Shown one piece after another: positions 1,339-3,506 of a stretch of DNA of 64,000 nt; the first letter of the stretch is position 1; each line of letters starts with the position of its first letter. The translations under genes were made by a program, and so were the position numbers. Source of the stretch: Pavona decussata (taxonomy: Eukaryota); NCBI GenBank assembly GCA_977016875.1, contig CDRNST010000018.1, positions 248,001-312,000 on the forward strand. The letters run 5' to 3'. The notes beneath the pieces are model-generated. The model was not told the origin of the DNA. It saw nothing but the letters and a program-made list of their open reading frames with translations, and made no database searches.

Positions 1339-3506
1339 ACCTGTATCCTTGTTTTTTTTTTTAAAAGGCAGTCCTAAGTATCCGCCGGGGGGGGGGGGGG
1401 GGGGGGGAAACGGCAAAGCCTTTTCCCCCATTTGCTTTTCTTTCCTGTGTTGGCTCTTACCAGTACGATGCCGGTTCGTATGATCAGGGAAAATGATGTG
1501 TTACCATCTGCTTTGCCGAGAAATGATAATGATGCTGGCGGCGAAGCCTCCCAACACAGCCGAGTTATATGAGGATGTGTCCGATGAGGAATTTTGAGAC
1601 GCCAATTCAGAGTTTATCAACAAAGTAGCCCGTTTGGAACATGAGTATTTTGATGCATTACATGTTGAAGATGTGCCCGAGAACGCTGCGTATGCAAATT
1701 CTGATGGAAAAAATACCACAAGTGTACGAGATGTCAGCTCCTTTGAACGTGATCATTTTCACCCGTCGAACGTGACGCCTGATTGGCCTTGTTCAGCCTT
1801 TTTTAAGACTGATTCCTTTATGCCGGCCCACGAGATTTTTACTGCTTTGGAGTCGGACGGTTTTCGTGCCAATCACATCCGGTGTCTTCAAAGAAAGCCA
1901 ACAGGTTTTCCTTACCTTTCGCACTCAAGCCTTGCGTGATGCTTTCCTCCAGAGAAGTTCTTTTGTTGTTTCTATGCGCCCTGGCAGACGATTTGTGCCT
2001 AACAATGCTGAGCGAAGTCTTACCTTTTTAACTGTGTATGGTGCACCGTATGAATTGCCCGACCCTGCCATTATTCATCAGCTTTCTCCGTACTGTGAAG
2101 TTGCTTGGCATCGCCGCAGAACTTACCGATCTGGCAAAACCGGTGGTATCTTTAATGGCTTGCGACATTATCGTGTTCAGGTTCATCCCTGTATCCCCAG
2201 CTATTTACGGTTTGGTAAGTTCCTTGTTCGCCTGTATCAAGACCGCCAAGTTCCTACTTGTCGTAAATGTAATAGACCTGACCATAAAGCGGCTGAGTGC
2301 CGCAACATTGTTTGCTTTAACTGTGATGGCCTTGGCCATACGGCCCATCAGTGTATCAGGCCTATGTATTGCTGCATATGTAAGAGCGGACAACACCTTG
2401 CGAGGGACTGTCCGCACTCTTGGAGGCGCACCATCCAACACGTTGATCTTGATGGCGCTCGAGATGATATTGCTGAAGGAACTGGTGCCGGAGAAGGTGA
2501 CCATGAAGACGCCGGGGGGGCCAATATTGATGGAGATCCGGCTGTCTATGACCCCCCCGTTCACTTTGGGCCTGACGATCCCTGGCCTGGGGAAAACTCT
2601 GCTGAATCTCTCGATGCATCTGCCGAGGCAATGAATGTTGATACCGTTACTCCCGTTGAAGATACCGCTGCTCCTGTTAGTGGTCCTGTTTCTCCCGGTG
2701 CTGCTGGTTACCCCGTGGAGGTCATTGATCCCCCAAATCCTGTGGTGTGTGCTCCTGTTGTTCCTGATTCTCCTAGTCCTGCTGGCGGTCATCCCGTAGA
2801 AGTCATTGATTCCCCGAATCCTGTGCTGTGTGCTCCTGTTGTTTCTGATTCTCCTGGTCCTGCAGGCGCTGATCTTGTGTTAAATCCGACTGGTTGGTCG
2901 GTGACCCCCGGTGACCAGACCCAGATTTCTGACCCAGTCCCGGTTCTTGATTCCCAAGGATTTTTGCAACCGTCTCCGGAGCCTGTTGGTTTGCTGCCGA
3001 TGTGGCACTATCATCTGCGGATGGATCTGCGCCCGCATCGTGGGCAGATATTGTTGATCACGTGGGAGTTCCCACCGATCCTTCTACGGCGATGGCCTCA
3101 GCAATACCCATTAGAAGATCCAGTATAAGGCCGCCTTTGCCACCTCATCTCGGGCGAGTTGTGCGACAGAGGCCTGAAGAAATTGCTAATTTCGCGAACA
3201 TCAAGGTGTCAGCTCGGAAGTCGACTCAGCCGTCCCGTGTTTCGGCGCCGCCGTCGCAGAAATCTGCTGCTGCGGCTCGGAGCACGCCTCTGCCCAAAGA
3301 TAGTGAGGTTGTTATGGAGACTGAGGAGAGTTTAGGGAAGCGTAAAGACCCCCCCTGCTGAGCCTTTAAGGTCCTAACGATCAACTCTCACGGGTTTGAT
3401 CGTAGGAAAGAATTTTTGATCTTTGATAATGCAAAATATTATCTTGTTTTGGTTCAAGAAACCATGATTTGGGATTTCTCTGAAACAGCACGCGTGTCTG
3501 ACAGTG
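1339..3506 (+). mobile_element. U2-targeted Tx1 element, lineage A copy 1 (3'-truncated early in ORF2)
   Basis: ORF1 with three CCHC knuckles (CRKCNRPDHKAAEC, CFNCDGLGHTAHQC, CCICKSGQHLARDC). The ORF2 start FKVLTINSHG...VQET breaks off near 3506. Confidence 0.88.
1468..3361 (+). pseudogene. ORF1 of lineage A copy 1 (frameshifted)
   Basis: ORF pieces 1634-1939, 1866-3128 and 3002-3361 are collinear with the ORF1 at 28030-29828. There is an internal 81-bp duplication (PVEVIDxPNPVxCAPVVxDSP). Confidence 0.85.

Follow-up and report, generated by a model that had tools for sequence, protein, structure and literature searches.

A covarying hairpin with a loop E consensus in the 5' untranslated region of U2-targeted LINEs of a stony coral

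Site-specific long interspersed elements (LINEs) that sit in small nuclear RNA (snRNA) genes must make a translatable and mobilisable RNA from a read-through transcript of an snRNA promoter, the R2 ribozyme being so far the only paradigm. The question of how they do so is raised by a stretch of 64,000 nucleotides (nt) from the stony coral Pavona decussata (assembly GCA_977016875.1, contig CDRNST010000018.1, positions 248,001 to 312,000 of the forward strand; hereafter the window), in which three LINE copies inserted into U2 snRNA genes carry a hairpin within the 5' untranslated region (UTR), upstream of the first open reading frame (ORF1). A preliminary description of the window had taken this hairpin for a conserved and covarying RNA structure common to lineages with different ORF1s, a view that held when the alignment was enlarged, and had offered it as a candidate ribozyme or as an element of translation or 3' processing. 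From sequence comparison we conclude that the hairpin is a real, selected and covarying RNA structure, with the sequence of a known three-dimensional module, that it resides in the 5' UTR of site-specific LINEs of a known type, and that it appears to be undescribed as far as we searched the literature. With its 50-60 nt (about 55 nt) it is a compact fold, backed by covariation and kept far better than the proteins that accompany it, and it is a candidate for a new Rfam family.

Rfam identifies U1 and 5S genes in the window, together with U2 genes represented by their 3' parts, and the window belongs to a U2-U1-5S array of the coral genome. All three motif copies (on the + strand, as are all features given below by window position) lie between a U2 5' fragment and ORF1, in keeping with their earlier assignment to the 5' UTR of U2-targeted elements. 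Each follows the U2 fragment (nt 1 to ~31) by about 60 nt and has the U2 promoter upstream, and every copy in the array likewise stands downstream of a U2 promoter and leader. In copy 2, for example, the leader (~nt 1-31) is retained 5' of the element at 35748-35778, where it gives a sub-threshold Rfam U2 match, with the promoter further upstream; a junction stretch and a U-rich tract, present in both of the sub-families described below, fill 35779-35806 and lead into the hairpin. The insertions are laid out as the U2 5' part to about nt 31-50, the element, a poly(A) run and the 3' part of U2, which resumes at GTATCTGTTC, the branch-point-box site. ORF1 starts 45-110 nt downstream of the hairpin, after a pyrimidine-rich spacer, with its ATG at 1468-1470 in copy 1, at 35909-35911 in copy 2 (in a conserved GTGGTATGG context) and at 61464-61466 in copy 3. 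The two ORF1 types that had been distinguished after the window copies are indeed different, being 41% identical.

Pfam assigns Exo_endo_phos (the apurinic/apyrimidinic endonuclease, APE), RVT_1 and zf-RVT domains to ORF2 and zf-CCHC to ORF1; an RNA recognition motif (RRM)-like region with CCHC knuckles is the sole part of ORF1 that is conserved among the motif-bearing lineages. Both frames are open in one copy outside the window (L054), over 602 codons in ORF1 and 1082 in ORF2. By domain make-up and U2 insertion site the coral elements appear Keno/Tx1-like, Keno being the name of the Tx1-clade LINEs specific to U2 snRNA genes that Kojima and Fujiwara reportedly described in 2004; the ORF2 homologues matched in the databases bore no names. 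Keno elements are APE-type, U2-specific Tx1-clade LINEs of vertebrates, lancelet and Hydra (PMC4640811, PMC4494074), and the coral elements resemble them in the APE-type endonuclease and reverse transcriptase of ORF2, in their insertion into U2, in the poly(A) followed by U2 from about GTATCTGTTC and, presumably, in being expressed through the promoter of their target. The difference lies in the 5' UTR, for which no conserved structure is mentioned for Keno in these papers (PMC4640811, PMC4494074); several unrelated 5' UTR types coexist in the coral array.

How widely is the hairpin distributed, and with which proteins? A census of the 602-Mb assembly by pattern search, covariance model R1 and core pattern gave 14 copies. 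Twelve of these sit in the U2 genes of a single array, on contig C18, and two are off target (L008 on C28 and L094 on C15); at three mismatches the core pattern was not commoner than its reversed control. Further copies came from five other coral assemblies in ENA, reached through ORF1 homologues. A pattern scan of JGI metagenomes gave 11 matches, all in unrelated bacterial sequences and set aside; on metagenome contigs L073, L078 and L080 a terminator-like hairpin, CCCCCGGCAAAGCCGGGGG, follows GTCCTAAGTA, a chance resemblance. The coral copies fall into two sub-families. In sub-family 1 the hairpin closes with AAAAGGC/GCCTTTT, ATAGGC/GCCTAT or GAAGGC/GCCTTC-type strands, and both an AAA linker and a C-run are present. 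Sub-family D, which comprises L051, L094 and, from L096-L098, six copies of which four are distinct, closes with strands of the GTGTGGCG/CGTCA(A)CAC type and has neither linker nor C-run. Common to both is a 29-nt core, identical at 26 of 29 positions between sub-families that share only 25% identity in their ORF1 proteins (over 180 residues); similarly, D copies from other assemblies encode ORF1s that are 53-60% identical to the local one and have cores identical at 27-29 of 29 positions. The UTR 3' of the hairpin could not be aligned between lineages. The core is thus a conserved island within diverged flanks, which points to selection or module exchange rather than to recent descent or conversion from the U2 gene, and argues for a hairpin module that has been kept or exchanged among lineages with strongly diverged proteins.

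The letters quoted for the three window sites, namely the closing strands, AGTCCTAAGTA, GCCG, the G-run, CGGC, AAA and the C-run, were all confirmed. AGTCCTAAGTA has three exact occurrences in the window, against 0.7 expected with up to one mismatch; a fourth match, with one mismatch, at 49881 lies inside an open reading frame and was dismissed as chance. A "diverged version" had also been proposed at 27912-27983, and this did not hold: the site, a hairpin of another U2-inserted lineage (GGAGGC...GCCTCC), has the closing helix GGAGGC/GCCTCC and the GAGTCC word and lacks the conserved AGUA/GAA core, and the core covariance model gave no match there at E<=5. Its relative L039 likewise combines the closing helix and the GAGTCC word with the absence of the core. 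The remaining U2-inserted lineages of the array differ in this respect: their 5' UTRs are unrelated, and each begins with a stable hairpin of its own. There are at least four such further lineages (L041/L043, at G000:C18:212446 and 224301; L042 and L050; L045; L047-L049). The 5' UTR hairpin of L041/L043 has a stem of 13-14 base pairs (bp), and L041-L043 and L050 retain U2 to nt 47-50, which implies a target duplication of 12-15 bp and a different register of the 5' junction.

The closing helix, P1, carries evidence for an RNA structure. It is 7-8 bp long and is formed in copy 1 by AAAAGGC (1363-1369) and GCCTTTT (1418-1424), in copy 2 by ATAGGC (35807-35812) and GCCTAT (35847-35852), a pairing upheld by covariation and by a strand-swap test, and in copy 3 by GAAtGC (61341-61346) and GCCTTC (61389-61394). 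Compensatory change in this helix had been noted among the three window copies and could be confirmed and much extended with a swap matrix, an alignment of 20 copies and an alignment of sub-family D alone. In the swap matrix, P1 5' strands paired best with the 3' strands of their own sub-type: ATAGGC strands reached -7.3 kcal/mol with their own partner versus -4.9 with partners of sub-type 1a, and D strands about -8.5 kcal/mol with their own partner versus -2 to -7 with others. A hand-made structural alignment of 20 copies, in which long G-runs were shortened, had 87% of its cells paired versus 70% in column shuffles, a value reached by none of 2000 shuffles, and six P1 positions showed at least two Watson-Crick pair types (among the P1 positions AU/UA/GC, AU/GC, GC/GU/AU, GC/CG/UG and CG/GC were seen). 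Sub-family D by itself, in an ungapped MAFFT alignment, was 93% paired with four pairs changed on both sides; one P1 pair was seen as A-U, U-A and G-C and another as G-U, A-U and G-C. In the model-fitted alignment A4 the helix was partly out of register and still scored above all shuffles. Since the closing helices of the two sub-families are unrelated and nevertheless complementary, this covariation supports an RNA structure.

The interior of the hairpin proved to be folded differently from the GCCG/CGGC stem first assumed. That stem shows only C to U changes, several of them of CpG-decay type, has no double change and does not rise above shuffles. An alternative pairing was proposed by RNAalifold on the structural alignment and was tested on nine distinct 29-nt cores, aligned without gaps. 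Core bases 1 and 29 form a G-C pair in sub-family 1 and an A-U pair in D. A bulged U follows as base 2, after which CC (bases 3-4) pairs with GG (27-28), the 3-28 pair being U-A in both L096 copies, and bases 11-13 (CCN) pair with 20-22 (N'GG), the 13-20 pair being seen as C-G, U-G, U-A and A-U. These inner helices have 96% of their cells paired and three double-changed pairs, a score that none of 500 shuffles reached, and slid controls showed no double change. Applied to 221 kb of related loci, a covariance model of the core (R2) recovered all copies and gave no other match. We regard the resulting fold as well supported by the sequence comparison: P1, P2 (a G-C or A-U pair, the bulged U and two C-G pairs), an AGUA/GAA internal loop, the 3-bp P3 and a GCCGGG apical loop.

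Mapped on copy 2, P2 consists of the 5' strand 35815-35818, whose G pairs with C35843 and whose CC, beyond the bulged U, pairs with GG at 35841-35842 (double changes G-C to A-U and C-G to U-A), and of the 3' strand GGC at 35841-35843; P3 consists of CCC (CCN in the alignment) at 35825-35827 and GGG at 35834-35836, both 3' strands being placed by the covariation of the inner helices. The apical loop GCCGGG occupies 35828-35833 and is the site at which the G-run is expanded in other copies. Between P2 and P3 lie UAAGUA (35819-35824, with AGUA at 35821-35824) on the 5' side and GAAC (35837-35840, with GAA at 35837-35839) on the 3' side. AGUA and GAA are invariant in the nine distinct cores, and both flanking helices are backed by double changes. 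AGUA facing GAA is canonical for the sarcin-ricin motif, also called the eukaryotic loop E or bulged-G motif (PMC1865062), and by this consensus UAAGUA opposite GAAC is a sarcin-ricin/loop E internal loop.

This fold accounts for several features of the preliminary description in another way. AGTCCTAAGTA is indeed invariant, though not as an unpaired loop: its GUCC belongs to helix P2 and its AAGUA would be the S-turn strand, so that it comprises half of P2 and the AGUA strand of loop E. Words of 7-9 nt from AGTCCTAAGTA found no complement in the rest of the element. Pairing of UAAGUA with the 5' end of U1 (6-7 bp) is a conceivable further reading; loop E accounts for the same letters. The G-run is able to grow from 7 to about 21 nt because it lies in the apical loop. 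Its observed lengths of 7, 8, 12 and about 21 (window 1387-1407 and 61365-61376; L007) fit slippage there; in sub-family D the run is interrupted by an A or U and is not expanded. A long hairpin of G-run and C-run is the minimum-free-energy fold of single sub-family 1 sequences, but it cannot form in sub-family D and is therefore not the conserved fold, though sub-family 1 RNAs might adopt it as a second conformation. The AAA linker (35844-35846 in copy 2) and the C-run (1425-1429 in copy 1; a C/U-rich run at 35853-35860 in copy 2, which pairs with the G-run in single-sequence folds) exist as described in sub-family 1, but both are absent from D, which rules out the proposed pseudoknot of G-run and C-run as a conserved feature. 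The two remaining window copies depart from copy 2 in detail. Copy 1 (1363-1424, core 1371-1414, covariance-model score 31.6 bits) has an expanded G-run and one additional A after GAA, and copy 3 (61341-61394, 24.9 bits) is decayed, with a single P1 mismatch, GAC in place of GAAC and an interrupted P3 3' strand.

Could such a pattern arise with no RNA function at all, through gene conversion or unequal crossing-over from the U2 promoter and leader, or because the motif is a DNA site for a promoter or a binding factor? The motif borders on sequence subject to homogenisation in the array, 250 kb of one contig contain most of the copies, and several apical-loop changes are of the CpG-decay types, all of which this explanation would accommodate. 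It does not, however, account for a P1 that differs wholly between the sub-families and yet remains complementary, nor for inner pairs that change on both sides, as a DNA site would need no complementarity; moreover, divergence affects the flanks to either side but not the core itself, and the conservation holds in other assemblies and in copies off the array. We judge it very improbable.

If the hairpin acts as RNA, is it a ribozyme? An undescribed class of self-cleaving ribozyme would free the element RNA from the U2 co-transcript, in the manner of the HDV (hepatitis delta virus)-like ribozyme of R2. Like the HDV-like 5' ribozymes of R2 and other LINEs, the coral motif is a conserved structure heading a site-specific LINE that is transcribed together with the gene it targets, its unpaired-looking nucleotides are strongly conserved, and loop-E-like modules occur in the hairpin ribozyme. 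However, cmscan of copy 1 and 11 further 5' UTR loci against Rfam 15, run with permissive filters, found no self-cleaving family at E<=10 in any lineage, there being no match to hammerhead, twister, twister-sister, pistol, hatchet, hairpin, VS, hovlinc, HDV, CPEB3 or drz, and returned only sub-threshold U2 matches, driven by the leader, and chance microRNA matches. The HDV layout does not fit either. Its strand order, P1-P2-P3-L3-P3'-P1'-P1.1-P4-P4'-J4/2-P2', would leave about 16 nt between the would-be P2 and P4, where P3, L3, P1' and P1.1 need at least 22 nt; the motif is without the nested double pseudoknot, and the likeness of its GGC-AAA end to J4/2 fails, with the linker missing in sub-family D and no catalytic C. 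In addition, the nucleotides that seemed conserved without pairing are explained by a standard structural motif.

The off-target copies bear on the same question from another side. In L008 similarity begins within 3 nt of P1, which speaks for the ribozyme, but about 30 nt upstream of P1 are common to L094 and its relatives in the array, and both off-target copies keep the whole hairpin, from which it follows that their templates were not cut at or within the motif. The ribozyme proposed in the preliminary description is thus not supported, and we consider self-cleavage extremely unlikely. The same slim chance applies to its most specific form, a new, very small ribozyme class built on the loop E module (compare loop B of the hairpin ribozyme) that would trim LINE transcripts read through from the U2 promoter; if true, 5' processing by ribozymes would no longer be confined to R2-type elements but would include APE-type elements specific to snRNA genes.

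A different possibility is that the U2 leader, the U-rich tract and the hairpin together imitate a small RNA, be it an snRNA, with Sm site and 3' stem-loop, or 5S rRNA, with its loop E arm, and so might serve as a handle for a small-RNA export or import pathway or for escape from snRNA-type 3' processing. In alignments to the Rfam U2 model the U-tract, found 5' of the hairpin in sub-families 1 and D alike, falls on the Sm site and the G/C hairpin on stem-loop IV, and the scores rise thereby from about 21 to 31-41 bits, still below the gathering threshold of 46; with regard to the Sm site RAU(4-6)GR, AU4-7G occurs in 7 of 18 copies versus 1.9 expected from shuffles. But the Sm-like word is absent from the whole ATAGGC clade, cross-species copies included, the G-run:C-run hairpin on which the U2 model relies does not exist in sub-family D, and no 3'-box-like word was seen after the hairpin in those UTRs that were read by eye. 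As to 5S, eukaryotic 5S rRNA has the same motif class and 5S genes lie in the same array; like the sarcin-ricin loop of 28S rRNA and loop E of 5S rRNA, the coral motif sets AGUA opposite GAA with Watson-Crick helices on either side, which makes it a shared building block and not a member of a functional family. Unlike these, it lies in the UTR of a mobile element, and there is no significant similarity to 5S beyond the motif itself: alignment to coral 5S did not rise above shuffles, so that a 5S origin was also rejected. An origin from U1 is not supported. U1 stem-loop I and sub-type 1a share a 10-nt word, AGGCAGTCCT (window 26460-26475 and 34180-34195 versus 1366-1375), and the U1-inserted element at 51413 has only 19 nt of U1. 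At that place (51413-51433) another element comes after the 19-nt U1 5' fragment and constitutes a U1-specific insertion within the array. Imitation of a small RNA appears improbable to us.

What, then, might the hairpin do? We infer that it is best read, in broad terms, as a docking site for translation or for ribonucleoprotein (RNP) assembly. In this ranking a role in translation stands first, binding of the element's own ORF1 or ORF2 protein (ORF1p, ORF2p) next, and an snRNA- or 5S-like handle is weaker. We tentatively favour, as a possibility somewhat short of probable, a non-catalytic docking module that would recruit the translation machinery to ORF1. The RNA of the element would be a read-through transcript from the U2 snRNA promoter, carrying the U2 leader and having none of the usual history of an mRNA, and the hairpin would dock the small ribosomal subunit, or else an initiation factor, for the translation of ORF1. 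Such a role fits the place of the motif 45-110 nt before the ORF1 AUG, the spacer rich in pyrimidines and the unusual way in which the transcript arises. Of the alternatives to a ribozyme that had been raised, translation is preferred here, and 3' processing finds no support.

[quoted passage not shown] IIId combines a loop E with a hairpin loop of at least three G and binds the 40S subunit, and its GGG pairs with CCC in the loop of expansion segment 7 (ES7) of 18S rRNA, a contact essential for 40S binding (PMC2726286, PMC3794592). In all copies of the coral motif the apical loop is GCCGGG or longer and has at least three consecutive G, and, as in IIId, a loop E, with its predicted S-turn, lies below a short helix in a 5' UTR hairpin (PMC2726286). 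The motif lacks the IIIe GA(U/C)A loop, the IIIf pseudoknot, the IIIabc junction and domain II of HCV-like (type IV) IRESs, its distance to the AUG varies, and its host is a cnidarian retrotransposon and not an RNA virus.

Several observations weigh against a role in translation of this kind. The ES7 (helix 26, h26) loop of the 18S rRNA on contig C717, which may be coral or symbiont rDNA, reads GGTGGATGTTAGCGTTTGACTCCATC and has no CCC; E-value scans of Rfam gave no IRES match, and no other part of a type IV IRES was found. Because the 18S rRNA lacks CCC and the other parts are missing, the IIId likeness is one of design and not of membership. As the AUG spacing varies and the spacer is not conserved, exact placement in the P site as in HCV is unlikely, and loop E motifs bind partners of many kinds. 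No RNA run with the element came up in a search of sequencing runs, and contigs drawn from three presumed RNA runs and one DNA run of a second organism were spurious and partial, with no ends. Finally, the copies are related and come mostly from one array, so that the independent changes behind the fold are modest in number, about 6-8 in P1 and about 4 in the inner helices. If ribosome docking is nonetheless correct, the coral elements would have arrived at a IIId-like solution outside RNA viruses. The h26 (ES7) apical loop was read as GTTAGCGTTTGAC at G000:C717:3132-3221 and in two more units 7.7 kb apart, in each case free of the CCC triplet that HCV-like IRESs exploit in vertebrates.

The same features can be read as a binding site for the element's own proteins, with the CCHC knuckles of ORF1p, or ORF2p, contacting the G-rich loop and the S-turn for RNP assembly, cis-preference or handling of the 5' end, comparable to the 5' protein-binding motif of R2 or a retroviral packaging loop. 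All motif-bearing lineages encode an ORF1 with an RRM-like region and CCHC knuckles, the motif stands at the 5' end of the element RNA, and the loops of sub-family D read GGAGGG or GGUGGG, G-rich GGAG and GGUG loops being classic ligands of retroviral nucleocapsid knuckles. We nevertheless think it rather unlikely, for LINE ORF1 proteins are in general binders without sequence specificity, and with ORF1s only 25-41% identical a specific fit of protein and RNA would have to survive large change in the protein.

Beside docking for translation, which we continue to place first, retroviral constitutive transport elements (CTEs) offer a further comparison, since they too are cis-acting structured RNAs for the export or expression of an unusual, intronless retroelement transcript. 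A CCUAAG-like word occurs in the CTE as well. Unlike the CTE, whose internal loop binds NXF1, the coral motif has no two-fold symmetric pair of loops. The conserved word of the CTE internal loop is AAGACA (PMC4330393), the motif reads AAGUAC, and AAGUAC is explained by loop E, so that identity with the CTE was rejected.

Further insertions and variants were seen in and around the array. A Mutator-like transposase frame of 451 codons with a full domain (Pfam E 4e-85), at window 24256-25611, is a nested insertion within the 25 kb that separate the first U2 5' part from its 3' part. The leader variant GGCCATTTGG is common to the disrupted U2 genes of several element lineages (window 1320-1324; L001, L004, L039, L044, L045, L046 and L063), intact genes reading GGCCTTTTGG; it was either carried by the elements or is an old variant of the array. 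A lineage with related ORF1 and ORF2 is found outside U2 genes in other coral assemblies (L062:2880-2960, L065, L066, L067, L068 and L070), where it follows a repeat with a hammerhead-like core, CTGATGAGGCC, or on the other strand in L068 and L070, GGCCTTTTGGGCCTCATCAG, and carries at its 5' end a U2-like remnant, GGCCTTTTATCAGTTT, and a GGGC-GAA-GCCC hairpin. A ribozyme-bearing repeat may be the target of this LINE lineage.

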